In this document: positions 4,801-63,998 of the stretch, piece by piece
Numbering within the stretch: position 1 is the stretch's first letter
Layout of the letters: each line of letters opens with the position of its first letter
Source of the DNA: Klebsormidium nitens
Taxonomy: Eukaryota > Plantae > Klebsormidiophyceae
DNA length: 64,000 nt
Assembly: GCA_000708835.1 (NCBI GenBank)
Contig: DF236964.1
Location: forward strand, 310,001-374,000
Reading direction: 5' to 3'
Notes under the pieces: model-generated
What the model was told of the DNA's origin: nothing
The model's input: the letters and a program-made list of their open reading frames with translations, nothing else
Databases searched by the model: none
Translations under genes and position numbers: made by a program

Positions 4801-6750
4801 TTCAGGATGGTAGTATAATTGAAATGTGTCATTTGTCGCCAGTCTTGAAACCCAGATTGTGATTTTCAGCCACTGAAGTTGAGCCTGGGATATTAGGCGA
4901 ATTCTCCAGTACAATTCTAATCTTGAGGAGTCAGCGAGCAAAGGTTCCCCTCTTCAAAAGTGCGACAAAGAAGCTTGACTTCCTTGGCGCTTCTGGCCTT
5001 GTTTTGCACTTTACTGTCTATGGTTTGTCTATGAGCTGCACCTGACAGAGATCGTAGGTACTTAAACCATGAAGTGATCCTTTATTGCATTGCCGCAACG
5101 ATTGGGGATAATTTGCTTGGCGGACTTCTCGCCAGAACTGATTTCCAATTGTTGAGCCATCCCTCCTTTGACGGGTAGTGCGAAAGGTAAAACCTTTGAC
5201 AGTCTTGATTTGTAAGCCGTCCGCTTTCTATCGTGCTCGCAAAGCACATGTGCTGTCTCGTTTGTGCCGCCGAGGACGAGGAGGCGTTTGAGTCAATGCC
5301 TCAAATGCTGTCCTGAAATCGTAGAGCCGCACTTTGTGATTTTCGTGGAAGATTCAGCCCCTTAGTCTCGTTGCTCTTTAATTTGTTCGCATCCGTATGG
5401 GAACGGTCTCGATAGGTTCTCTGCTTGCTTCGAACACCATAAGCGAATGGCTTTGGCGCCGTCCGTGCAGTGTTTGATGTGTTCCCACCAAGGGATTGTT
5501 TTTCTGCACACTTAGCTCGACTTTCATAAGATTTGCTGCCAAAATCTGATATGAAGCGCTCATTCTATGCCGAGGATTCCTGGTCAAGCCCACCGTGTCG
5601 TCAGTCGACCCGTTTGCCTCGGACAAGGGATTCCGTTCTCCAGTAGTGTGGTTGACTTCAAGCAATGTCTTTCATGTGGTTTCAAGATGGTACATTGTTA
5701 CTCGTTCTTTCTCCTCACCTAATACTGCAAGAAAACTTTTCTTGGCAATGATTCCTTGCGACGCTTAGCCTGTGCTTGGAGCTGAGCTACGTGCAGATGT
5801 CTGTTACGTGCCTTTTTCTGTCCATGCTTGAACTTTCCCAGCTCAAACGTCGAGCTGGCTCCAGTTGCACGGCTGTGTTCAAGAATGTCAAACGTGCATC
5901 GAGAGGCGCTTCTGGACTGACTATTGAAGGGCGGGTTTCTTCGGGGCAATCCGGTGACCTGCTGAGCAGCTTGTACTTCAAGTTGCTGCCACACCGAGTG
6001 TAGTGGACGCCTTCTAATCACGGTGACTCTTTTCCATGCCTTATTGATTGTTTATTTGTATGTCTAGTGGACAGGCTTGCTCAGGTCCTTTCGCAAGTCG
6101 CCTAAGGTCGGTGGATCTTTGAGCATACGTCGCTGTTTGAGCGGCAACTCAAACAACGGACGGGCGAAATGATTCGTACATGGGCCTCGCTTCTTCATCT
6201 GCTTTGCTGCAACTTTGCCTGCTCACATTCGCATGTTATCGTGGATCGTGACCTTGTGGCGAGGAGGAACATACTCTGAGGTGATAACAAGCTCAGCGTG
6301 TTTCTGCTTGTGCAAGTTCCCGAGCCGACCTTGGATACACTTTGCCTTCCTCGAGTCTTAAGTTGCAGCCGTACACCCCTTTGGAGTTGGGTGTTGGCAT
6401 TTGTCGTTTGACCACAGGCTACTCCTTTCTTGGTGTACATATTCTATAGCCGAGCCCTCTCGTACTCAAATGGATTCTCTTTCGATTTCAATGTAGAGTA
6501 CAAAAGTAGACTGGAAAAAACGCTCCCCGGAAAAACGCTCCCCGGCGTAACAAAGCGTCGTTACGACTCCGAATGACAAGATGTGGCATATGCCGTTTCA
6601 CTGTCCCTGACCTTGTTATTTCTTAAGCTTCCTTGTTGACCTTACATTTCTGGCAATGATGCTCAAATCCCAAACGCACGCTTTTGCTCGCAACTGACCT
6701 GGTGCATACTGAAGGCCAGTTGTACAGTAGTCTGTTGCTACGACGACGAC
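1880..6750 (+). pseudogene. Two decayed tandem paralogous units (~2.6 kb period), LRR-like coding relics; boundaries approximate
   Basis: A 31-bp identity (ctatcgtgctcgcaaagcacatgtgctgtct) occurs at 2593-2623 and 5228-5258, with colinear similarity on both sides at a ~2.5-2.65 kb offset. The + frame gives PLPIVLAKHMCCLLCAGEDDQAFESMP vs PLSIVLAKHMCCLVCAAEDEEAFESMP, with mostly synonymous differences. LxLxGND-like motifs are present, and many stops and indels. Confidence 0.7.
6516..6545. repeat. Perfect 15-bp tandem duplication (aaaaacgctccccgg x2)
   Basis: Read directly from the sequence. Confidence 0.9.
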
Positions 6751-7990
6751 CTGTGCCTACATGTTGACGAAGCGTAGCCCGACAATTTTGCGGCAGTGTT
6801 GTGTCTGGGCATGTAGTGTGTTGCGAAGAAGGCAATGTCACCTAGGGCGAAGTCTTCGATCCTGGCCGTCAGATTGAGGGCATCCGTTCGAGTGCCCTCA
6901 ACAGAGTCCAAGGAAACAATAGTCTCTCTTGCTGTTCATCTGGAAACGTTGTGAAGACTTGGACTTGTTGAGGCTTATTTGCTCGTGGCCTTGGCCGCAT
7001 CTCTGCATCCACATATGTGGCTATGAAGAGCATATAAGTAAGGCTTAACCTCAAGGTTGTTATAGGACGAGCCGGGGAGTGTGTTGGCGTTGCGCAAGAT
7101 ACTTCTGAAGACGCTTCTGCATGCAAGCTGTTCCGACTTTGCTGCGTAGTGGGCAGAAAAGGTAGTCACCCTTGTAACCGCCCAGCAGCTCGTAATTTTG
7201 AGTGAAAATACGCTCTGAGTTTACTGCCGGAGTCTTCTTGTTGCAAGCTTGCTGCTCCGCGACTTTATTATAGCTTCTCACTAGGGCAAGTGACCAACAC
7301 TGGCAACGGCTGCAATTACCGTCATTTGGCCGAGCCACAACCTTGGAACTCGGTTGCGCATTATCTATCAATTTCTGCTTTGGTTGGATGTCAGCTACGC
7401 CGTCCCAGCTGCGTGGCACGTTCCACACCATCTGCTTCAAGTGGAAGATGCTTGGGATAACATGCAAAAGCAGCTTGGCGATGACGTTCCGCCTGCTTGA
7501 GCTGCGCTCAGAGATTGTGGGAAAGGAAGAGCCAGCATTTACCCGTGCCCAACGAAGCCTTTCAATGTCTGCAAAGTCTTTCAGAAAGGCGCGACTGACA
7601 ATGTTTACGAAAGAAACCTGAGTACATGGTGCTTACTTGCACCTGGCCGTGATGAGCATCTCTTGGGTTACACCCAGTCTTTGTCTGTCAGCCAGAGCCT
7701 CTGGCTGTACGGCAGCACCTTAACGGCCCCACCTTAGGCTTGCAATTTGCCCCTTTGTACAGTACCCCGTTCCAGTACTTCTGCCTAACGGAAATTGCAA
7801 CAGCTGGCTTAAATCTGACGAGGCGTCCAATGCACGGCCCGACTGAGTTTGAGAACCTGGGGCAAGGGAAAGCTACCCGGAGCTTTTCTACCCGGAGAGT
7901 CTTCTTTACGATATCCCAGGATACGATGTCCGTAACTCCACTTTTAAGCCTAACATGATTCTTGCAACTCCTTCACTTTGCGTTTTGCAG

Positions 7991-10987
7991 ATCACGCCTC
8001 TTCCCGGCGCTTGGCCACAGAAGCCCGGGTCGGCGACGCTTCCCTTCTTTGGAGTACAGGTCCGTTCTCATACACCTTTAGAGACCGCTAGTGTGACGCG
8101 CCTGCGGCGTCCAGAATAAGAGAGGCCTTAAATGCGGTTCCCCCCGTGAGTTATAGTCATGCTCAACATTGACCTGTTCATTTGGCGAACGCCGTGTAGA
8201 AACGGATAAGCAGACTGGGTGTAAGGAGTTAAAGATACTTCGTGTGTCTGCAATCTTCCAGTAGAGGTGCGAATGCTGTTCCTTTCATACATACCCCACA
8301 GCGAATCTAAACAGTGAACCGGATAGTAAAGTGTGCCATCTGCCGTGTGAAAGCAAGTTCTTGGTATGAAAGCACACCACCGCCCTCTTGAAAAGTTTCT
8401 CCTAGATAAAGCTCGCGCTCTGACCTGCACCTGAGTATCTAGCCGGTTCCCGTTTCCTCTGCTCGTGTCATCCTCTGAGCCTCTAGCTTTTGTAACAACT
8501 TTCCAATCTCCTTCTCGTCCGTTTTCCGTTTTGCAGCCTACAAACGGAAACCCGAGCCATCTTGAGTCTCCCCTCAGATCGTTTAAAGCATTAATCACCT
8601 TTGGGCTTGGATCATATCAGTCAGCTTATCCTTTCAATTTCTTTTTGCAGCCCGCGGTCGTGGACGAAAACGGGCGGGAGCAAGACGGCCCCTGCTCCGG
8701 CTACCTGTGCATGAAGGCCCCCCCGATCTCCCTCATGCGGACGCTTTACGGCGACCAAGAACGGTACGAGACGGCCTACTTTGCGCCCTTCAAGGGCTTC
8801 TACTTCTCGGGGGACGGCTGTCGGCGAGACGAGGACGGCTACTACTGGCTCACGGGCAGGGTGGATGACGTCATCAATGTCAGGTGAGGGGGAGTGGTCT
8901 TGGGCTTAGACGTCTTGCAGCCTAGCGGGTGTTGAAGACGCGGATTCCGCAGTGCATCGCTGGCAGAAGACGTCAGAATCTGAAAAGAACTGGAAATCTG
9001 GTAAGAGTTTGGAGGCTCAGTTTCTGGGAAGAAGGGGTCACGACTACCCTCGTCGACCTTTCTTGGCAGCGCTTATTTGCCTTGGCGACTGCAACCCATT
9101 CCTCCGGACCGCGCTTAATTGCGTCAAACTTGATTCTCAGATTGTTCGTTACAAAAAAGCTGCGGCTTCTGCTCGAGTCTTGCCCGCTGTCAGTCTCAGG
9201 CTGATCGCCAGGCCGGCCCATCTCCAATCATAACAATCAGCCGAAGAAGGGGTAGCTAGCCCCTATTGTCGACACCGTGGTCTTCCCTGATCAACGCTCT
9301 ATTGTTTGCAGTGGCCACCGGATCGGGACTGCGGAGGTGGAGTCGGCGCTTGTGTCGCATTCAATGTGCGCGGAGGCGGCTGTTGTTGGGTATGATCACG
9401 AGGTGAAAAAGTTCTTGTCCTTTTATGTCCGTGATCTGCAAGGCTACTGCTGGCTTAGGTGTTCTTTTGTATTTTGATGAAGTGAACTCTCCATCGTGTT
9501 TGCTGACATCGCACTCAGCGGGAAGGCACCAGTCGGCGGGTTTGAGCATAATTAAGAGAACACGTGCGAGCGTGCTGCTTGCTTAAGCTTGACTTGTGCC
9601 CGTTCCAGCGAAGGGCCGCCTTTTATAACCATGCAAAAGAGGTGGGAAGTTCCATAAGCTGGTTACTGCGCAAGCTGTGCAGCTAACGCCGTGACGACGT
9701 TTCTTGTTGAATGCTGATGGAAAAGTTTCAGCTTTTTAGACCCGAGGTGTTTGCTTAGCGTTCTTTTCTCTAACTTATTTTAGCTACGCTGATATGCAGA
9801 TCAAGGGGCAGGGCATCTACGCGTTCGTAACGCTGATGGAGGGTGTTGACTACTCCGATGATCTTCGGAGGCAGCTGGTTACGACTGTCAGAAGCGAGGT
9901 GGGGGGGGCGTTCTGTTTGTAATCTCCGCCCCCTAGGTTAATCCTCACAGAAGAATCCTGGGGGACAACGGGCGAATTCTGTCAAAACTTAGAACTCTCC
10001 ATTGAGCGCTGGAATTGACAACGGAAATGGTGAAGTTGCTATGAGGATCGTGGGAGCTGGTGATGTTCACATTCCACCCAATTCCTTGCTGGCATCGCCA
10101 GTCTTTCCAGTAAATTGTCTGGTGCATGTGAAAAGGAGCGAGATCTGGCCACCTGAAGTCGTCTCCTTCTTGGGTTTTGCTGCTTCTTGTGCTCTTTAAA
10201 TGTGGCCTTTCGGAGTGCTTCTTCGTCTGCCTGTAAAGCCTGTAAAGAGCCTTTCGCCACCGACGTGCGACTTATATTCCTGGAACTAGACAACTCATGA
10301 GATGCGTGGCCCTTCAGATACGTCCTGCGACAGACAGCTTGCTACTCACATCGGTGGGCTTTCCTCTGCCGTTTGGTACTAAAATTTGCGGTGATAACCG
10401 CTAATACTTACTGCCTGCCGTTCTTGTCCAGATTGGTGCGTTTGCCGCTCCTGACGTCATCCACTGGGCGCCCGGGCTCCCCAAGACGCGCAGCGGGAAG
10501 ATCATGCGGAGGATCTTACGAAAGATTGCGGCCAACCAGTTGGACGAGTTGGTAAGACTGCTCCGCTATCTCTCGTGTACAAAGTCGTCGGAAAAAAATG
10601 TCTTCAACATGGCGAAGGCGGATGTACCGGCCGACACAACGCGCGTCAGTTTTTCTGCGCAGACTTACGGAGTCGTCGGCGTCCGTGCAAGCGAAGCTGT
10701 TTCCTTCTTCTGGTTCTCAAAAATCCATGAACGGCCACCATTACCGCTGCACCTGCATGCCGTTTCTTGAGTTCAGTACGTCTGCGTCGGAACCGACAGC
10801 TTTGGGCTGTTTGTGTGCGTTCCGCAAATCAAGAGACGAAGACCTCTGAATTCCAGGGATACCGCGGCTCTGCAGATTCGCGGTGACAGGAAGCTCATTC
10901 GTTCCTCCTTCCCTTTTGCAGGGAGATACGAGTACCCTAGCAGAGCCAGCGGTCGTAGACCAGCTGATCGAACTGCGAGGGAAGTAA
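7991..10987 (+). CDS. ACS: Acetyl-CoA synthetase, 3' portion; exons 7991-8059, 8651-8883, 9312-9402, 9800-9898, 10432-10551, 10922-10987 (stop TAA)
   Basis: Spliced translation: [23 protein letters not shown]|PAVVDENG...[28 protein letters not shown]|[13 protein letters not shown]...|[10 protein letters not shown]...|[33 protein letters not shown]...|[21 protein letters not shown]. All introns are GT-AG with compatible phases. The acyl-CoA synthetase motifs GRVDD and [12 protein letters not shown] are present. The 5' exons were not found in the window. Confidence 0.94.
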
Positions 10988-13900
10988 AAGGATGCAGGTT
11001 GGCGGATGAGTTTGGTAGCTTTCCTCAGCATGATTCTCGAAGCAGTAGGGAGAGTCCAATATATGTAGTAAAAGTAGCTGTCTGAGATCATCGTAGTAAC
11101 ATTTACTTAGCCGCGCTCACCTTTGCTCCTGAACCCGGATATATGCAAACAAGTGAAGCGCAGTTGGCCCGATATAATCCGAAGGAGTACCTAGGAAAAC
11201 GGAAGACGTAAATCGAGTATTTGAAGGGACGGTCATTGAGGGGTTGGGCCGAAAGATCAGTTTGGCAAATCAAGCTTAAGCGTCCGAACGTCCTTGCAAG
11301 CCTGCGCCTCTCAAGGCTTGACCGTGATACTGACCTTCTGAACTAGTAAACCTTCTTGAAGCCAAATCAGGCGCACCAGGCCCTGTTTTAAAATCTTGTC
11401 GCTCAGCTCTTCTCTTCGAAGTGGTGGAGAACTGCGGAGAAGAGTCTTGATATGACATTGATCGGCCGGTCTCACTCACTGCAAAGTGGATCGACAACAT
11501 TTGACTCCAAACGGACTGCTCTATGTCCCTTCTGGACTTCATATGCCGACTATCTGCTATGTATTTCAGTCCGGTCCGAATCAACATATGATCACAATTG
11601 AGTGGCGTTATATACTCTGGTAGTGGCAATGACATTCAACTTGAAGCTTGGGGACCTAAAGGATACCCTAGCGAAGGGCACTGGTCAACGAGCCACTGAA
11701 CGTCAGAACCGGCGCGCCACTGTCTAATTTGGCTTATTTAGATGGGCATAAGTACTTCCAGCTCACACTGACTGTTAAAGAAATCTTTTAAATCTGCAGA
11801 ACTCTGTAGGGGATTTGACGAAACCTAGAGCTGCGGCATCACGAGATGATACGTACATAACACAAATCAGCCTAGCCCAGGCGCCCTTGGGACCAAGACG
11901 ATCACTGTCTGGCCGGCTAGCTTCTTGTAGCCCTGACCAAAGTTCGCAAAGGATCTCCTAGGGCTGCCCCCTTTACCGTGAACAGGCTTAATCTTGCCAC
12001 GATTGCCGCCCGAGTCGGCCCGGGCCCCGGCCCAGCTCTCGCATTGACGTTATACGTGCTTATTTTGAGCTTGCAACCGCCCTTTCAATTTCTGTGCGTG
12101 CGGCCATGTGTTTAAGATTTGTTTGTTTGATCACAGGTTTGATTTGCGTTTCTAATAATCCAATCTGCCTTGTGTACGTGCTGTTCCCGTTGTTGGTGGT
12201 GCATGCAGAAGCCTGGCCGGTTATGCATTAGCTTGGCCGGTGTCGCGATTTTCAGTTGGATCGTTCAACTGACAGTGACCTGCGCTTTTACGCCGAAAGC
12301 GCTACTCCATTTGAAATATGCGTGATATGTGAAGATAAAGACGGGCGTCCGTTGCAAACAGACGTTGTCGATGTGTCACAAAAGCAGAAAGAGCGAAGGC
12401 TGCGAAAATCTCCATGATCGATCGAAGGTCAAGGTCCTAACTTAGTCAGATTTTCTCCTCTCACAGTCACTGAGTACGTCACTGCAACAACGGCCTTTCT
12501 GCAACCGCAAGCATTCATTAAGAGTTTCAAGAAACAGCGCGACTAACAACTTTTGTGGCGATGACGATCTGCCGCCGTCTGAGAACGATACGTCGTTCCC
12601 ACACAAGTCTGGCCAGCAATCTTTCTCAGACGCCAGGGGTTTATGTTGAAAGCATTTTGCTTTATTGAGCGCTTGGCTTCGCTCGGAAGTTCTCAAGCTA
12701 GCTGCCGGGTCTCGATGCTGAGAGACTAGGTCGATCTTTGGATTCCCGGAGCGAGACTGAAATTGTGAACGCTATCATATACGCAAAGCGATTTGCATGG
12801 CACCAAAATCCCGGGAGGCACCTCTAGGTTACCGATTTTCTGTTGCAATCTGCAAGGCTTTCCGCTGGCCAGTGTATGGGTGGGGTATCGCAGCAGTTTG
12901 CACCGAGCGGTCGTTCGAGAACGTCTTGAAGGCTGTGGCATTTCAATGCTGCAGGGATCTGAACGGTTCAATTAATCGACGGATATCTCAAGCCTGAAGT
13001 TAGGCTTAAAGTTTCTTCTCACTCTGATACTGATCAGATGATTGGGTCTTGCTAGCCGGCGCGACGCCCATATGTGCTTCTAGGAAGGCCTGGCAGATTC
13101 AGGGGTAGAATCAGGGTCAGTTCTTAACAGAATATAGACCCGGTCCAATTCCTTAACTCGGCTGAAGACACTTGTTATGTATAGCTTCGTTACAAGTTGT
13201 AGTCATGGGTCACTTGTGCAGGCGCGAATTATCGTGTTTACAGCGCTTCTAGCTAGCTACCTTGACAAACAGACCTAAAAGCCGCTTACCACAAGCTTCT
13301 GCATACAAATCATTTCGAGTGGTTCAAAGTTCCTTCCTTCCTTCCTGTACTCAAAGCGGAAGTAGAGAATTGCACGTTCAGCCTGTCAACTTGTAAGTGG
13401 CTATGACGAGCTTCTTTGAATCTCTTCCAACCAGAGATACCAAAATTGCACGAAGCCACTTCGTCAGTTGCGATTATCAACGAAGTCAGTGAGGACTAGA
13501 CGTCTCTCCCGTCTGAAAGCATCTAATGAAATAAAACCGGCGCTTCTTGCTAGCTCGTAATGGGTGCATTATTTCGAATGCATACGTAGACTGAGGGTCG
13601 ACTCCTGGTTCGTGTCAAGCAATGGAAAAATGCTTGGGCACGGATATGAACCGGCCAGCGCCGATCCATCTTAACGTCTCCTTAGTATTGACCTGACCCC
13701 TGGCCAATTAACATTGGCTTTGTTCTTCTCAACTTGGTTATATGCGGTTGGACATACAGTAGTAGAAAGTGCTACGGGTGTTAAAACCAGTGGCTATGAC
13801 GATTATAGAAAGGCCTGAGCAACGCTACCATCAGGACAAAAGCTCGTGCGTCCTCATGCATGTCGACTCCTCGTTACCAGCCTAAGGCAGAGCCGCTCGA

Positions 13901-39640: not shown

Positions 39641-41605
39641 CTCTCTCCACTTGCTTCGAAATCGATTAGTATCACTTGATCTCGTTGACCAAACCCAGGT
39701 TCTCACGTTAGCAACGCGTTGTGTTTCGACCGTTTCGAGCTCAACAAATTCAAGGTTCATTTCAGAAGTCCTGAAGTCTTCAGCCATAAAGGGCTGTCCC
39801 AGAGCTGACAGAAGGACAATGAGGCTTCGATCGGACGTCTTCTGCAGAAATAATGCATCAGCCCGTCAACGAACTTTTCGCAAAGTGACGGGTCAGATTG
39901 ATACCTTGTAGAGGATTCGATAGCACGCCGGGCTATATATTGTACCCTTGGTATTTATGGTGTTAGTGGGCGCTAACTTACGCTCTTTGAATCAGACAAC
40001 GAAGTCCTGGCGCTAGTGTGGCTTTCCTATGGCCATTTTTCTCATGCTTTTTCAGGCTGACGTCGCGGATGAGCCCTGTGGCAAAGGACTCAACTTGTTT
40101 CGTCTGCAGCTCGGTTCTAGGGCCGTCTAGAAAAAGCAGAAGATGTATGTGCGCTTCTGATTTGGCCGCGCTCTGCCGGTTCAAAGGACGTTGTCTCTTT
40201 CGTGTCGATAGATAAAAAAGACAACTTTATCCAGTCTGCAAAGGTTGCGCGTTTGGCAGTGCACGGTTTCGAGCGGGCTTTGTGCACTGTGCGCGGTTTC
40301 AGACGACGGGCGCGTACAAAGCGGCAGCCGCCTGCCGACCAACTGCGAAGTTCGAACCACGCGCGCAAATTATTCGAGCGACGAGGACCATTCGTGTCCG
40401 TGCGATGAAAAGGTCAAAACGTACGGCTTATCGTGCGGCCAGGAAACGACGATTCCCGTTTGCCTCTCGTTGACTCTCGTGTCGAGTTTCGTGTCGACAC
40501 TTCCGTGACGTTGGTCGACTTTCGGTGTCAGAGGAATCTGTTTGTTTGGGATCCGGGATTCCGGTCCGCTTTCATCGAGCGTGCAATGTCCGCAGACCAG
40601 GAAGCCGCCACGTGGCCGCCACAGCCAAGGACAGTCACAGTCTGGCCCTTGAGTCCGTCCGGGGTCAAAAGTCACAGTATCCCCCTTAAGAATCTAGACC
40701 TGCTAGACCAAATTACAAGGTGACCCTGTGTTCTAGTAAGTCCTTATATAAAAATGCTATATTGCTGTGATTCAAGTGATTCCTGCATGTTGCCATGATG
40801 CCTGCACTTCTCATATATATCACCTCATGCGCTATGCACCTGGGTGTGCACGCGTTCATTAATACGAAGTGACCATCACTAATCAGCAACATCTCGGCCT
40901 TGGAACTTTAGATACACAGCTGAGCAACCAATGAGCAACGAATCGCTTTTTCAACTTCTACCTGGTTTGGCTGCATTCAGCTGCCGGTGGGGGAGTCTTT
41001 AGTAGCTGGTGAGCGAGCCTTATGTGTCCGTTTCGGTAGGCCATTGTACTGTAGAAATATTTCATTGCATAATAGGTGCCACCACCCGCTGTGCACTGTA
41101 ATCTTCAGGGTGTAAGAAATTGCAGCTTGCCTGAATGGGGCCTGCATCATGCCTGGTTAAGCAGGGCAGGAAACTCTAGCTAGCGTGATCTGCTGCGGGG
41201 ATTAGACAGACGATCGAATCTGATCAGTGCCGACCATATGATGAAAACCTTCAGCTAGCATTGCAGTGCAAGCAGAGTAGCAAGCCTGTGGCTGAGAACA
41301 TTTTTGCAAGCCAGTCAAGAGTCTTGCCGTTTCCTGACCGCTCAAGAAACTGTATGTTGTCTTGCCCTTGCAGTGCCCCAGTAGCTGCTGTAATCTTCCA
41401 GTACCATGATTCAACATCTTAAACCCTGTTACCCCTATTTGAACTGAAGGGTCCCCACAGGCCGATCTGAGCTGCAGGTCTGTGATGTGCCGTGCCTTAA
41501 TCTACTCCATAGAAAGGCATATTACAGATATTGGCTCGGGAATGGTTGCTTTCATTCAAATGTAAGTCCTATTCCAAATTTGCTTGTATTTGCAGATCAG
41601 TTGCG

Positions 41606-44600
41606 ATGGGGGTGATGAGCGGTGCTAGTCTTCTCTGTGCACTTTTCTGTCTCTACTGCACCACGTGCACATGCACGGACACGCTATCTGGCATTGCTGA
41701 GGTGAGTCGCGCCGCGACAATGATTAGCAGAGCTAGGCCCCACACATTCTCTCAGCAGCCGAGGCTTGGACCATCATTTCTTTCTCCGCATGATGCTCCC
41801 AGGCTCGGTTGCATCAGCAACGAAGGCAGCAACAAGTTTTGGTACAGTATTGCCGTTATGCGGCCCTTGCATTCGTACGAGAGACTGCACTATACATGGG
41901 GCAGTCACTCTGTGCTTGCATTTTAAATGATGCACACTGCGCACATGTATACCACATCATTTAGTTCTATGATGATGGAAGAGCAGCCAGTCCCATCATT
42001 TTAGTATCTCAAACCGGCACTCTAAAGCCCGCGTGGGTCTTCAATGCAATCGCCAGAGTCTAATCACACTCACAGTTTCCGTTGCATGAGCACTGGCGAT
42101 CGCGCAACCTACAGGCCGCTCCCTAGAGTGGTCTTCAAATGTTCCTGACTGACAAAGTATGTTCCAACTTATGCTCCGCAGGACGTGGCCAAACCTGCCG
42201 TCCCTGGGGGTCGCCGCCTCCTGCAGCAGGCCGCCCCCCTGTGCACTGCGGCCGGGCAGTACAAAGCCGACCCGGCATCGAGCTGCACTTCCTACTGGCA
42301 GTGCACAGCGAGCGGCCAGGGCTTCTACCGCCAGTGCGGCCCAGGGACCGCCTTCAATAACGCCTGCTCCTGCTGCGACTTCCCCTCCAACTTCGTCTGC
42401 GGGGGGGGCGGCGCCACCCCTGCTCCGACCACCAAAGCACCCACCCCTGCTCCGACCACTAAAGCACCCACCCCCGCCCCGACGACCAAAGCGCCGACTC
42501 CTGCCCCGACCACAAAGGCACCTACCCCCGCCCCGACGACTAAAGCACCAACCCCTGCCCCAACGACCAAGGCACCCACCCCTGCTCCAACGACAAAAGC
42601 ACCGACTCCCGCCCCAACTTCCTCAGGCAAGCCTACTTCAAAGAAGGTTTTGCGTGTGCAAATCGAAAGCTGGTTATTGTATTCCCTGCCAACTGCGCTT
42701 CTGCCAGAGCAGTACAAGTATGGTAGGATCACAGCTGGTTTAGGTTATGGTTAAGACGAAGGACTGACAAAAGTAAGGTCATAGGCGAGTCTTTCCGTGC
42801 TCGAAAACGCAGCCTGCACTGATCTTCTTTCTGGTCACTTTCAGAAATGCGGAGGGTAAGAATGCTTAGAAAAGAAGCGGACGTCAGTCGAGGCTGTTCA
42901 AGTCAAAAGCTGGTTAGAGGGCACTCAAAACCAAATGTGGTCAAGAGCAGAAGTTTCTGTGAATCTGGTAGCAAGGAGCATCGAGGGCTTCAGCATTCGT
43001 CTTCAACCCACTTCATCAGAAGTGACCAAGCTTGGTTAACTGTGGAATCTCCCTGTGATATTGCAGGCGTGGGCGGCTGCCCTGCCGGCTGGCTGCCAGC
43101 AGTGGGCACCCTCTACGATAGCTGGCCCAAGCCTGGCACGACCGAGTGCATCACCTATTCCGGGTGTGAATACGCCGGTCAATTCTCTCTGGTCGACCCC
43201 GGTCCTTGCGGCGGCCCGTGCGCCGCGGGGGCGCAGTCTCTGAACGGCGGCCTCTCTCCCCCCAACGTCTGCTGCCGCTGGCCCGAAGCAAAGGTCGCCC
43301 AATGGTCCATGGCTGCCACGTGGGAGCGGGACAGCGCACTCCTGGGAAGGAAGCTCCAGGTGACCACTGCCCTTCGCATCGCGCAGTGCGGCTGGCGGTA
43401 AATTTAGGAATCGATAGCGTACATTTCGCGCGTAGTGTACGGTCTTTTGGCCCCCCTGCCTTTCGAGCGTTTCCGAGCCCGTCAAGCGTTTTGCGGGTTT
43501 GAGAAAGGGGACATGGAAATGCGGAGAGCTCATCAAGCCAGCAACGTCTAGGGGTCTGCCTACCTTTTTCTCTTTCCTTTGTGCCCCCATGCTCAGCCTT
43601 GCGCCTTGCAAGCCTGATACGCCCTGCCTTCCTGCTTGTCTATGTTACCTGCACAGATGTTTGCCTACGAGTGACTTTCGGTTCTGATTGCGGCAGCTCG
43701 GTTGTTTTGCCGACTTTTTGGGGCTTGACCAGGAGCGCGTGCAACAGGTGGTGGTCTTGGTTCCGGTCAGCTGGCAAGCTACCCATGCAAGATTCAGTTC
43801 GGAACCGGACCCGCTTCGGATCCCCTTAGGATGGCGTTCAGACACAATGTAACATTTCGGACCTGTCCGGACCGCGTCTGAAAGAGTCTAATTCGGACAG
43901 AACTTCTGGTCCGACGCGAGTCCAAACCTGGTCCGAACCTGGTCCGGATCCAATCCGAACTTTCATGTCCGTCTTGCAGCATCAGTCTGAAGCATGTCCG
44001 AAACGGGTTCGAACCAGTCCAAACTCCGTCTGAACCGCACTTAAGTTCGGATCGACTTCGGACCTAGTTCGGACAAAAGGTTTCTCGCAGTGGGGCCGGC
44101 CAAGTCATGCGCAAGATCCACTTTTGAAAGCCTTTGAGCAGATTGGGACATGCAAGCAGTATTGCACGCATACCGCGTCCAGATAGGCACATCCTTGAGG
44201 ATGTTTGCTTGCCATCACCCCAAGCAGGCTTTCCCGAGAAGCTCGATGAACGCATCCGGAAAAGTAACGTTCTACCTGCATGCTCGCAGCACCCATGAGA
44301 GGAGGACGCAAGCTTCGAGCCTCTCGTCTGGAACGACCCCTCCAAGTAACGGTCCTAGATCAAGCGTTTCTTGGGACTCAATTACTAAACCGATCCAGCG
44401 CCCCCTTAATGTCAGGTACAAGTGCTCGGGGGGGCAGGGACCACCGCGTTCGTGAACGTGAAGGACGTGTGCAGCGACTTGGACTGCGAAGGGTGTTGTT
44501 CTCAGAACACGGGGAATGGGGCTTACAAGCTGATAGACATCGAGAAATGGCCTGCGAGTACGCTCCTTGGGTTCCAGCACAGCAGCCCAAGCTTCGACAT

Positions 44601-44706
44601 CAACAACGTGCCCTCCCCGGTCCAGAATGGGAGGCGCCCCGGCGCGGACGCGGGCGTCATGGCGGTGTGCTACAAGGATGCGGGCCCCGCTGATAGGATC
44701 CCGTAG
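41606..44706 (+). CDS. Secreted protein: signal peptide, RRLLQ propeptide motif, CBM14 (peritrophin-A-type chitin-binding) domain, Pro/Thr/Lys linker and C-terminal double-psi-beta-barrel (RlpA/expansin-like) domain; exons 41606-41701, 42182-42626, 43067-43359, 44416-44706
   Basis: Exon 1 is MGVMSGASLLCALFCLYCTTCTCTDTLSGIAE|gtgagt. The CBM14 pattern C-TAAGQYKADPASS-C-TSYWQ-C-TASGQGFYRQ-C-GPGTAFNNACSC-C-DFPSNFV-C is at 42242-42400. The C-terminal region reads GTLYDSWPKPG..ECITYSGCEYAGQF..LLGRKLQV..VNVKDVCSDLDCEGCCSQN...LIDIEK. Phases are compatible if intron 2 uses the GC donor at 42627. Confidence 0.85.
42416..42619 (+). repeat. Coding 27-bp tandem repeat: 7 full TPAPTTKAP units plus a partial unit
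   Basis: Read directly; the seven full units differ only at third codon positions. Confidence 0.95.
43790..44075. repeat. Imperfect palindromic (fold-back) element rich in ttcgga/tccgaa motifs, in intron 3 of the CBM14 gene
   Basis: Central stem tcggacagaa-c-ttctggtccga at 43893-43914. Outer arms ttcagttcggaaccggacccgcttcgga (~43793-43820) and tccgaaacgggttcgaaccagtccaaact (~43997-44025). Many ttcgga motifs lie on the left and tccgaa/gtccgg motifs on the right. Confidence 0.62.
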
Positions 44707-46329
44707 GTCGTTTGATTAGAGAGTCATATGTCCGTAGAGTTTTGTTTTGCTCATTGGGCAATATTTATAGAAAGACCCTGCTCTTGCGTTGAGATGCCCG
44801 ATTCCTGATTGTTTGGAGGTTTCGAGACCCATTAATTGGATGTGAGTGTTTGCAGTCAAGTGTGTACTTGGTTCGTCCAAGTAATACAGATTCAAACGTT
44901 CAAAATTGCAATTATATGCAGGTGATTGATTGTGGCTTTGGACACGTCGTACAAAGATAGGATGAACGGGAGGGACATCCTTAAACGGTAGATCATTCTC
45001 AATGTTTTGTACCGAGGAAATTATCGACGTTTCATAGTCAAAATACAGAGTCACATATTGATCATAGTATTCAAAGGCAATCATTGAACACAATAGGATC
45101 ACTTGAGCCAGCTTGACGAGGTCAAAAGGCCGGGGTCCATTTAGGCGTCTAGTTTATATAACCTCCCAACAGTTCTTTAATCTGCCGGCCTGAGTGGACC
45201 GTTCAACTTAAGTGCCATTGAAAGGTCATGCATTTTGACGTCACTCTTCAACGAGATTGCAGTTGACAATTTTGCGACGGCTTCCCAGGTTATAAAGTCG
45301 ATATATACCGCCCATTTGTTATCAAAGAGAAACCGCTTTCCGATGGATGAAAACACCAAGTTTGCGGACGTACCCATGCGCCATCCCGACGCAGTCAGTG
45401 ATGCCACGTCCGTGACAGACTCGGCCCGATTGGCTTTACTCTCGATCAACTCACTCGTCCAGCGCTCTCACGATATATATTTACGTTACCGCAGATAGCC
45501 AAGCGCGCGGGTTCTTTCAGCATGCCACGTTCTTACCTATATGTGCATGGCACATGCGCAACTGAACCTTCACTGGCATGTGGCGGCGAGTAAGTGCTCC
45601 ATCAAGCTAGCCTCCGACACGAGTGATCGAGCCAGCTGGTCTTATTATTTCACCATCCATTGATTCTCTCATATGTTTACGGCGTCGCACTCTTGCTGGG
45701 CTGGCTGCACATTGGTTTTGGAAGCTGTAGGAAAACGACAGACTCATTGGCGTTCCGGAGGCTTCTTGTTAATTGCCGCTCATATTTCTGTGGCTGTGCT
45801 TTGACTGGCATGTCCCATCTGGAACGTTCTCTGAGGCAACTCTTGAAGGTAGGCGGCCTTCTGATCTGGTAACAAGTTCTCACCGGAACAACTTCGTGGG
45901 CTGCGGCGTCAACGTCTCAATCTTCCGACGGAAGTGCTTTACCATGATTTTACGAATAGACTTTGTTGTAATTCGCCCTTTTGACGAGGCTGCGCAGCGT
46001 GTGAAAGCCCGTTTCGGCAAGCGGGCCGAATTCGAAGAGAACTGAATCTTGTCGACCCAGCTGCTAAAGACGCTCACAAGACTAAAGAGGGACCTCCAAC
46101 GAAAAGTTTTGGTTTTGCTAAGCCGCACTGTTATCTGACGTTGTCTTCCTTGCAATTGCCCATATACGTGTCCCTTCACGTGCTGCGGGTGTCGAGGAGC
46201 TCGCGTCATTGCTTGCATGAAAGGCCGTCTGTTGAGCTCAATCCCCTTCATCTTTGGTCTTAGACGCGAAACTCGCTGCCACTGGGCGGTCCCTTCGCCG
46301 CACACGGTAGCCATCAGTTAATCGCTTCT

Positions 46330-63014: not shown

Positions 63015-63998
63015 TCAAGGACCAATTTCGCTCACGCTTAACGATGGCATCTTGTCCTTCAGGTGAAAGAATCTTTGGCTAGCCTCCTGGCTATCTTCCT
63101 TATCCTCAACGCCAAACATGTTAAGCACACAGCGAAACTGCAAGTGCATCAGCTTGGGGCTTACCTCGACCAGCTCTAGACACGTTCCTACTTGTTCTGA
63201 GGTCCAAGCATCAGCTGTCAACACTAGGAGATTTTCAAATACAGGAAAGCCCTTTCCTCTAACAGAACGCGCAAGATGAAGTAAGGTCTTCGCATTGATG
63301 CTAAGCTCCTTCACGTTTGCCAAGCAAGTCAGGATGGAGGCCATGGTGTGTTGCTCGCCTTTGAAATCCAAGTACCGGAAGTCGGCTACCTCCAGGTCCT
63401 TGGAATTCTTAAGCAGACCAAGGAGTTCATCTTCATCGAAGGTTTGATTAGCTGCTAATCTCCTCAACTTCCATGGCCTGGGTAGCACGAACGGGCCTGG
63501 ATAATCTGAATACAAATCAAGGCTAGTCAGCTCAGGAGCATCTATCCTCATTTTCCTGTCCACATCCGGCCGCAGGTGTAGAGATAGTAGACATGGAGCG
63601 TCGATCTCCACGCGGCCTAGTTCCAGCATCCTGACATCCTCGTTAACCTCAAGACCGACCATGTTATAATCTAGGAACAAGTGCTTAAGTGAGGTCGAGC
63701 TAATATTGGTCACAACTCCTAAGCAGTGTTCGCCATCGATATGCAGGGAAAGCTTCTCTAGATTGGGGGCCGCTTGCACAAGACTGGCTAAGGAGCTGTC
63801 ATTGCTGGATTGAATGATGGAAAGGTGAAGCTCCTTTAGACTGGCGGACAGCTTGTTGATGGGCCTGTTGATGGAGAAGTGGCAATACTCAAGGATCAGG
63901 CACTCAAGGCGAGGACACTTCGTAAGCAGTTGCTCCAACACGTCGAGCGGGTTGTTCGGCTGCAGCAGATAACCGTTCCGAAGGCAGAAGCGCTCCAA
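63015..63998 (-). CDS. Leucine-rich-repeat protein (F-box/LRR or RNI-like type), 5' end beyond the window
   Basis: An open 327-codon frame with repeated LxxLxL units (CPRLECLIL, LKELHL, APNLEKLSL, LKHLFL, APELTSLDL, VKELSI). The F-box itself is not visible in the window. Confidence 0.8.
   Translation of the reverse strand: MERFCLRNGYLLQPNNPLDVLEQLLTKCPRLECLILEYCHFSINRPINKLSASLKELHLSIIQSSNDSSLASLVQAAPNLEKLSLHIDGEHCLGVVTNISSTSLKHLFLDYNMVGLEVNEDVRMLELGRVEIDAPCLLSLHLRPDVDRKMRIDAPELTSLDLYSDYPGPFVLPRPWKLRRLAANQTFDEDELLGLLKNSKDLEVADFRYLDFKGEQHTMASILTCLANVKELSINAKTLLHLARSVRGKGFPVFENLLVLTADAWTSEQVGTCLELVEVSPKLMHLQFRCVLNMFGVEDKEDSQEASQRFFHLKDKMPSLSVSEIGP

Follow-up and report, generated by a model that had tools for sequence, protein, structure and literature searches.

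In a 64,000-nucleotide (nt) stretch of the genome of the streptophyte green alga Klebsormidium nitens (assembly GCA_000708835.1, contig DF236964.1, positions 310,001 to 374,000 of the forward strand; hereafter the window, whose own numbering we use throughout), we found an expressed four-exon gene whose product joins a putative signal peptide, an animal-type CBM14 (peritrophin-A) module, a repetitive Pro/Thr-rich stalk and a C-terminal domain of ~190 residues that, as modelled on a close homologue, is a six-stranded double-psi beta-barrel (DPBB). As judged by sequence searches, the DPBB domain, which is encoded by exons 3 and 4, belongs to no described family and is instead a member of an unnamed family of known fold. 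The data directly support the model and the expression of the gene, its match to CBM14, its repeat, the fold (for the close homologue), the conservation of the domain and the identity of its partner domains. We read the protein as a secreted DPBB protein that docks on chitin and acts on wall glycans, probably in defence, and assign this reading a probability of roughly 55%.

A word search with the open reading frame (ORF) containing exon 3 returned seven homologues (E values 1e-36 to 1e-12), and the translations of exons 3 and 4 matched homologues at E values of 1e-24 to 1e-40, so the pattern is not a product of chance. One homologue, P0004 (224 residues), contains nothing but a signal peptide and the DPBB domain, and two others, P0003 and P0006, contain contiguous, intron-free versions of the domain; by tblastn, the loci L001-L004 were 58-67% identical to both window exons. 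A profile search of 1.84 billion cluster representatives extended the family to 331 matches at E<=1e-3, 23 of them at E<=1e-30. The close set was algal, comprising Astrephomene, Tetrabaena, Pleodorina and Chlamydomonas incerta (Volvocales) together with Nannochloris desiccata (Trebouxiophyceae), with every protein annotated as hypothetical. The distant set was mostly bacterial and aligned in two stretches on either side of an algal-specific insertion. Scanning the species-representative genomes of bacteria and archaea with a profile built from 12 bacterial segments confirmed 142 relatives, and the bacterial carriers included Myxococcota (many of them Sorangium), Bacteroidota (Pedobacter, Marinoscillum, Chryseosolibacter), Fibrobacter, Cellvibrio, Hahella, Oligoflexus and others. 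The source databases call these proteins 'RICIN domain-containing', 'discoidin domain-containing' or 'carbohydrate-binding protein', names that derive from their other domains, or simply 'hypothetical'.

This broad distribution had no counterpart in the family databases. Pfam returned no match for exons 1, 3 and 4 searched singly and none for the DPBB domain in four full-length homologues at E values up to 10; NCBIfam searches of ten family members matched solely other domains; and PDB sequence searches with exon 4, with a 6-sequence profile and with a 118-sequence profile found nothing at E values up to 10. Queries in these and the other searches were single exons or homologues taken from databases. 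A literature search likewise turned up no paper linking Klebsormidium with kiwellin or CBM14 and none describing the domain. The original prediction had not recognized a described family here, and this view held, even with the 118-sequence profile. Two relatives had unusual layouts: in P0008 (Tetrabaena socialis PNH10862.1) a partial second copy of the C-terminal half of the domain precedes the full copy, which suggests either a tandem duplicate or a merged gene model, and in P0026, a member of the algal type, residues 1-190 form an unassigned N-terminal domain of ~190 residues with no Pfam match, which a Pro-rich linker connects to the N-half of the DPBB.

For the fold we relied on an AlphaFold2 model of residues 30-224 of P0004, a segment 59-62% identical to window exons 3 and 4, computed with a 118-sequence alignment (A3). 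The model had a mean predicted local distance difference test score (pLDDT) of 96.1 and a predicted template modelling score (pTM) of 0.91, and it followed the classical DPBB order, in which strand 1 is separated by a loop of ~60 residues from strands 2, 3 and 4; after strand 4 come a disulfide-rich loop, strand 5, a helix, a long loop and strand 6. A DPBB fold had been predicted from the window sequence, and in agreement with that prediction expansin, kiwellin, GH45, loosenin, barwin and cerato-platanin topped three structure searches. Foldseek on the PDB placed kiwellin at rank 1 (E value 2.8e-4, probability 1.0), followed by GH45, expansins, loosenin, barwin and cerato-platanin. In the second look made with VIA, kiwellin scored Z 8.7 (110 residues), expansin 8.1, mussel GH45 7.8 (127 residues), a papain inhibitor (SPI) 7.2, loosenin 7.2, barwin-like proteins 6.6 and the V-Csn chitosanase 6.5 (130 residues), and an exhaustive VIA comparison with 48,161 chains gave the same list, with secreted DPBB proteins at ranks 1-16. 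When the ESM Atlas was searched by shape, the nearest clusters were 'hypothetical' ones, from Fibrobacterota and from CBM5/12 proteins, that presumably represent the family itself, and then clusters of expansin, KWL1 and barwin; when it was searched by features, the first clusters were RlpA-like DPBB ones and one from Myxococcota labelled 'hypothetical', with kiwellin after them.

The domain is also highly conserved at the level of individual residues. The family has 22 invariant or near-invariant positions, five of them acidic, and the window protein has every one: A, T, S, P, E, C, G, C, G, F and V in exon 3, and D, C, D, D, C, C, C, N, L, D and E in exon 4 (44464-44544). Among 118 sequences, which came from algae, from bacteria and from one virus, T18, S22, P24, E30, D115, D119, D121, N129, D139 and E141 were invariant or nearly so, with D115 and E141 strictly invariant and D139 an Asp in 116 of the 118. 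As motifs, these positions comprise the Thr and Ser of strand 1, a Pro, a Glu-Cys within the first loop, the Asp that closes strand 4, a D-x-D-C-x-x-C-C-x-x-N loop and an L-x-D-x-E on strand 5, and the V-x-D-x-C ... L-I-D-I signature named in the original prediction lies at 44458-44544, where it extends to L-I-D-I-E. By DSSP on the P0004 model, D115 (window codon 44464) sits at the end of strand 4, and D139 and E141 (codons 44536 and 44542) sit on strand 5. In carbohydrate-active DPBB proteins a strand-5 acid is universally conserved, and the essential acidic residues of GH45, GH75, expansin and RlpA lie on strands 4 and 5 (PMC9485262). Judged by strand position in the model, the strand-4 Asp and strand-5 Asp/Glu of the new family would correspond to the essential acids of GH45, GH75/V-Csn, expansins and RlpA, and the conserved site as a whole looks like a glycan-binding or catalytic groove.

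The N-terminal half of the protein is of a different kind. The N-terminus encoded by exon 1 is hydrophobic (Kyte-Doolittle means over 11 residues reach 2.3, residues 6-19) and homologues of the DPBB domain have textbook signal peptides, which is consistent with a signal peptide, and hence with secretion, in the window protein. The CBM14 module that had been proposed for exon 2 was recovered by Pfam over the whole profile (PF01607, positions 1-53 of 53) with an E value of 1.9e-5 and a score of 25.1 bits, compared with a gathering cut-off of 22.1. CBM14 modules have a six-cysteine scaffold with a C-x5-C core and with aromatic residues before Cys3 and after Cys4; reading the exon 2 translation by eye, we saw the Cys pattern with Y-W before Cys3 and F after Cys4. 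The proposed Pro/Thr stalk, too, was identified as a tandem repeat by Tandem Repeats Finder, and its 27-nt unit, present in 7.5 copies, encodes a nine-residue Pro/Ala/Thr/Lys repeat. Within this repeat, RNA contigs from two public runs (X14 and X20) step back by 189 nt (42416-42604) and differ from the assembly by five substitutions, at 42472, 42505, 42562, 42565 and 42571; the transcribed stalk may be seven units longer than the assembled one, due to a collapsed repeat or an allele, or the contigs may be mis-assembled there.

The closest relative of the window CBM14, and the only close one in the word search, was P0163 (69% identity), an ORF on the metagenomic algal contig L085, to which the CBM14 and Pro/Thr linker together are 69-71% identical. 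L085 has two CBM14 exons (6187-6528 and 7552-7815; 71% and 56% identical to the window CBM14, respectively), and downstream on the same strand are three ORFs with GH19 chitinase matches (8909-11348). The CBM14 exons and the GH19 ORFs are probably parts of one 2xCBM14-GH19 gene. This type of CBM14 thus appears, from the arrangement on L085, to serve a chitinase too, and to have been shuffled and used repeatedly within this lineage.

The gene itself is well supported by RNA. The coding sequence lies on the plus strand, from the ATG at 41606 to the TAG ending at 44706, a span that the original prediction had given exactly, and its four coding exons comprise 1125 nt (374 codons plus stop; Table 1). 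We mapped contigs of four public runs onto 41500-44900. Intron-free contigs from X14, X15 and X20 (studies P5, P6 and P7) joined exons 1-2-3-4, skipping 41702-42181, the 440-nt gap between exons 2 and 3, and 43360-44415, and the proposed joining of exons 2-4 in transcripts was thereby confirmed in three studies. Contigs from the fourth run, X4, also span the introns, and X4 therefore contains DNA or unspliced RNA. Upstream, RNA contigs extend at most 133 nt beyond the 41008/41596 joint. Together, these data establish that the gene is genuine and expressed in a green alga. The predicted boundary between exons 2 and 3 was the one part of the model that needed correction, to a GC-AG intron after 42626: the joint has 5 nt of slack, the sole canonical-like placement (+3) is GC..AG and no placement has GT, which puts the end of exon 2 at 42626, in phase 1, with a junction codon split as G and GC (Gly). 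A GT located 21 nt downstream of the true intron 2 donor would mislead gene models built on sequence alone. Intron 3 contains a patch (43815-44081) of degenerate, 11-nt-periodic GTCCGAAC-like direct repeats with 27-32-nt inverted repeats (81% complementary), which may be a small foldback element.

Table 1. Features of the gene and its product, in window coordinates (UTR, untranslated region).
Feature	Position	Strand	Description	Evidence
5'UTR exon, 3' end	40978..41008	+	non-coding	loose-end consensus of four runs at 41595 maps uniquely to 40978-41007
5'UTR intron	41009..41595	+	GT..AG, 587 nt	donor GT at 41009
Exon 1	41596..41701	+	10 nt of 5'UTR, ATG at 41606, 32 codons	spliced contigs
Intron 1	41702..42181	+	GT..AG, 480 nt	joint in X14, X15, X4, X20
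Exon 2	42182..42626	+	CBM14 and repetitive stalk; ends in phase 1	Pfam, Tandem Repeats Finder, contigs
CBM14 (peritrophin-A) module	42242..42400	+	eight Cys, including C-x5-C core	Pfam PF01607
Stalk	42414..42615	+	27-nt unit x 7.5	Tandem Repeats Finder, score 236
Intron 2	42627..43066	+	non-canonical GC..AG, 440 nt	joint in X14, X15
Exon 3	43067..43359	+	N-terminal half of predicted DPBB (strand 1, long Cys-rich loop, strand 2)	homologues, E 1e-36 to 1e-26
Intron 3	43360..44415	+	GT..AG, 1056 nt; splits the DPBB domain	joint in X14, X15, X20
Exon 4	44416..44706	+	C-terminal half of predicted DPBB (strands 3-6) and TAG at 44704-44706	contigs, homologues
3'UTR, verified part	44707..44900	+		RNA contigs unbroken over 44413-44900, continuing past 44900

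An Rfam search of the window gave no match. Elsewhere in the window, a 326-residue ORF on the minus strand (63015-63995) matched the plant F-box-associated leucine-rich repeat profile (PF24758, E value 2.3e-6).

Having defined the family, we turned to the company that its members keep. Pfam searches of 101 distant members found CBM6 in eight, a CBM35-type module (CBM_35_2) in up to seven, CBM5/12 in seven, Ricin and F5/8 type C in four each, GH18 and PBCV1_P7 in two each, and GH26, GH114, CBM1 and CBM2 in one each; the remaining members had no other Pfam domain. Because many of the proteins otherwise contain CBMs only, their layout suggests that the DPBB domain is the active part. Among the algae, Astrephomene GFR42458.1 has a hevein (CBM18) module in front of the DPBB domain, and the other members had either no partner or small Cys-knot domains that matched only weakly, below threshold (ShK-like in P0013, EGF/DUF7107-like in P0011); a protist transcript combines the domain with CBM1 and hevein. 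No CBM14 was found upstream of the DPBB exons in L001-L004, and the CBM14 fusion is therefore not common to the closest relatives inspected. Upstream of P0003, at 4335-5558 of L001, two Cys-rich, CBM1-like motifs (C-G-G ... N-E-W-W-x-S-C-Q) that we noticed by eye were unconfirmed by Pfam.

The family also has a viral branch. P0049/P0160 (10001-11698 of contigs L086 and L087) is a 565-residue protein in which a transmembrane and coiled-coil N-terminus is followed by three subdomains of the PBCV-1 P7 type and then, at the C-terminus, by the DPBB domain. Its contigs also encode a major capsid protein of the nucleocytoplasmic large DNA virus (NCLDV) type, a PBCV_P4 protein and a dUTPase and are of the chlorovirus-like giant-virus type, and the gene is divergently adjacent to one for a PL14 polysaccharide lyase. 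P0049/P0160 is thus a plausible candidate for a wall-opening device of the virion, and the placement of a DPBB domain on a capsid-type protein beside a wall lyase hints at entry through algal walls.

To place the window domain among these relatives, we built an unrooted maximum-likelihood tree of 143 domain sequences (146 columns), entering window exons 3 and 4 as separate rows. Both exons fell within the algal clade (Shimodaira-Hasegawa-like approximate likelihood-ratio test [SH-aLRT] support of 99), nearest to P0003 and P0006, and all 23 named bacterial sequences lay on one side of a branch with support of 95, with virus-like and unassigned sequences in between. Horizontal transfer had been raised for each domain of the protein; for the DPBB domain, the tree argues against a recent transfer from bacteria into this alga and is silent on the ultimate origin.

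We infer secretion, chitin binding, activity on glycans and a role in defence as follows. The signal peptide would export the protein from the cell, and the CBM14 would dock it on chitin, most likely that of walls of organisms which the alga encounters, be they fungi, chytrids or other chitin bearers. The Pro/Thr/Lys stalk would be a flexible spacer, probably O-glycosylated, and the DPBB the working module, whose groove of conserved Thr/Ser and five acidic residues would receive a polysaccharide chain and either cleave it, as GH45 and GH75 enzymes do, or loosen it without hydrolysis, as expansins and loosenins do. The protein would thereby be an algal counterpart of the class I PR-4 (hevein-barwin) proteins. 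We favor a wall glycan as the target because the partners of the domain are nearly all glycan modules, because the bacteria that carry it live by degrading polysaccharides and by predation (Sorangium, Fibrobacter, Cellvibrio, Pedobacter and Hahella), and because in the giant-virus member the domain is part of a capsid-type protein whose gene neighbors that of a PL14 wall lyase.

Several observations weigh against this reading. The CBM14 score exceeds its threshold by just 3 bits. The structural Z scores of ~8 are middling by the tool's own warning, and we assign the DPBB fold because the matches are uniform and the topology is textbook, not because of the height of Z. The fold was, moreover, modelled on a homologue and not on the window protein; the latter shares 59-65% identity with the modelled homologue and those related to it and keeps all 22 conserved positions, and we therefore took the fold to apply. 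At the strand-1 position of the GH45 catalytic base the family has an invariant Ser, as in expansins, and the neighboring D/E/T is variable (as judged by motif alignment only), so hydrolysis is uncertain. The bacterial partners are heterogeneous (CBM6/35, ricin, discoidin, mannanase and GH114), and the substrate of the DPBB domain therefore need not be chitin. Finally, the volvocine relatives live without chitin walls.

The stalk and some of the structural matches could also be read in terms of the alga's own wall, on which the protein would act during growth, division or filament fragmentation, with the CBM14 binding a self glycan or glycoprotein. Expansins and loosenins are among the best-scoring folds, the stalk is similar to hydroxyproline-rich wall glycoproteins, and relatives in several green algae have other binding modules or none, all as expected of wall remodelling. 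However, the nearest CBM14 relative accompanies GH19 chitinase exons, an algal relative carries hevein, a classical chitin binder, and most of the bacterial and viral carriers attack polymers of other organisms; in addition, to our knowledge no chitin-like polymer is known in the wall of this alga. We therefore consider self-wall remodelling unlikely. In another reading, the C-terminal domain would contribute neither catalysis nor loosening and be just another CBM, making the protein a bivalent lectin or agglutinin. The domain does often lie C-terminal to true enzymes (GH18 and GH26), the usual place of a CBM, and NCBI calls some carriers 'carbohydrate-binding protein', although that name derives from other domains. 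Yet many members consist of one or more CBMs plus the domain, or of the domain alone behind a signal peptide, which would be unusual for a pure CBM, and the conserved acidic pair occupies positions that are catalytic in DPBB enzymes, which together make a pure lectin very improbable.

The DPBB domain might, alternatively, not act on glycans at all. Kiwellin binds a fungal effector, the Streptomyces papain inhibitor is a DPBB protein, and PR-4 barwins have RNase or DNase activity, and by analogy the barrel of the window protein could bind or inhibit a microbial protein or cut nucleic acid, the CBM14 merely concentrating it on the wall of an invader. Consistent with this idea, kiwellin was the top structural match in both VIA and Foldseek, SPI also scored well, and PR-4 proteins of the same layout have nuclease and antifungal activity (PMC4079191). 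Nonetheless, the Z scores of kiwellin, expansin and GH45 fall within 1 unit of each other, polar and acidic residues that are near-invariant from bacteria to algae do not fit a protein binder in an arms race, the bacterial domain travels with CBMs and glycoside hydrolases, and neither the KWL1 nor the Barwin profile of Pfam matched even at an E value of 10. A non-glycan function thus seems distinctly unlikely.

Extending the wall-glycan reading beyond the alga, we tentatively propose, while regarding it as doubtful in its full breadth, that the domain of exons 3 and 4 founds a new carbohydrate-active DPBB family, a glycoside hydrolase, lyase or expansin-like loosener acting on chitin, chitosan or related wall glycans. 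Bacteria would append this domain to CBMs and to GH18, GH26 or GH114 enzymes, chlorovirus-like viruses would carry it on a capsid protein as a means of breaching algal walls, and green algae, including a streptophyte, would have paired it with CBM14 or hevein as a PR-4-like weapon against fungi, older than the land plants. Taken alone, the gene is a neat and explicable mosaic; its broader value lies in the widespread, uncharacterized DPBB family that it exposes. This family is compact and highly conserved but lacks an entry in Pfam, in NCBIfam and among structures; it is a concrete candidate for recognition as a new family of the CAZy or expansin-like kind, and K. nitens, which assembled a PR-4-like layout of chitin binder and DPBB from different parts, bears on the origin of the plant antifungal tool-kit before land plants.

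The architecture, which the original prediction had not recognized, has a known parallel: a chitin-binding module, a linker and a DPBB also make up the class I PR-4 proteins (prohevein, potato Win1/2 and tobacco CBP20, with hevein CBM18, a hinge and Barwin), which plants secrete for defence and which show antifungal and, in some cases, chitinase or nuclease activity (PMC4079191). Both have a small disulfide-rich chitin binder at the N-terminus and a C-terminal DPBB, both are secreted (by prediction, for the window protein) and both come from the plant lineage, in which PR-4 proteins have a defence context; in the algal relative Astrephomene GFR42458.1, the module in front of the DPBB is itself hevein. 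In contrast to PR-4, the binder here is CBM14 and not CBM18, the barrel is ~70 residues larger and has its strands 1 and 2 joined by a long, Cys-rich loop, and barwin structures scored Z 6.3-6.6, below kiwellin or expansin. The Barwin profile (PF00967) matched neither the exons in Pfam nor the full-length homologues at E values up to 10, leaving only architecture and fold class in common. Kiwellin (PF24300 KWL1; PDB 4PMK, 6FPG and 6TI2), the top structural match (Z 8.0-8.7 over 107-110 residues, 16-20% identity), shares the disulfide-rich V-x-D-x-C ... D loop after strand 4, predicted secretion and the plant lineage, but it binds fungal chorismate mutase, lacks a CBM and has a different set of conserved residues; KWL1 gave no match at E values up to 10, and profiles A2 and A3 found no PDB sequence match to kiwellin chains.

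Expansins, bacterial EXLX1 and fungal loosenins (Z 7.2-8.1) have the strand-1 Thr/Ser, the Asp on strands 4 and 5, no acid at the GH45 base position and a modular association with CBMs. Unlike expansins, the window protein lacks domain 2 (CBM63), ending ~50 residues past the barrel helix with no second domain, and has L-I-D-I-E in place of the HFD motif; its family also has extra acids (D-x-D after strand 4 and a Glu after the strand-5 Asp), and DPBB_1 and Expansin_C of Pfam matched neither the exons nor the full-length homologues at E values up to 10. GH45 (subfamilies B and C) and the GH75/V-Csn chitosanase have a DPBB core with long loops and gave the longest structural alignments (126-142 residues, Z 6.2-7.8), and, as mapped by motif, an acidic residue of the family would fall at their proton-donor position (PMC9485262), but Pfam Glyco_hydro_45 did not match and the presumed base position is Ser. 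The L085 locus, at the identity given above, carries what looks like the same shuffled CBM14-linker module, with a GH19 chitinase rather than a DPBB as its catalytic partner. Since no Barwin, KWL1, DPBB_1 or GH45 profile matched, the window protein is, on profile evidence, akin to PR-4 by architecture and not a member of PR-4 or kiwellin, and with neither a CBM63 as second domain nor an HFD motif it does not strictly qualify as an expansin. What is known is the fold and the type of modular arrangement; what is new is the unnamed DPBB family and its union with CBM14, an unusual binder for the plant lineage.

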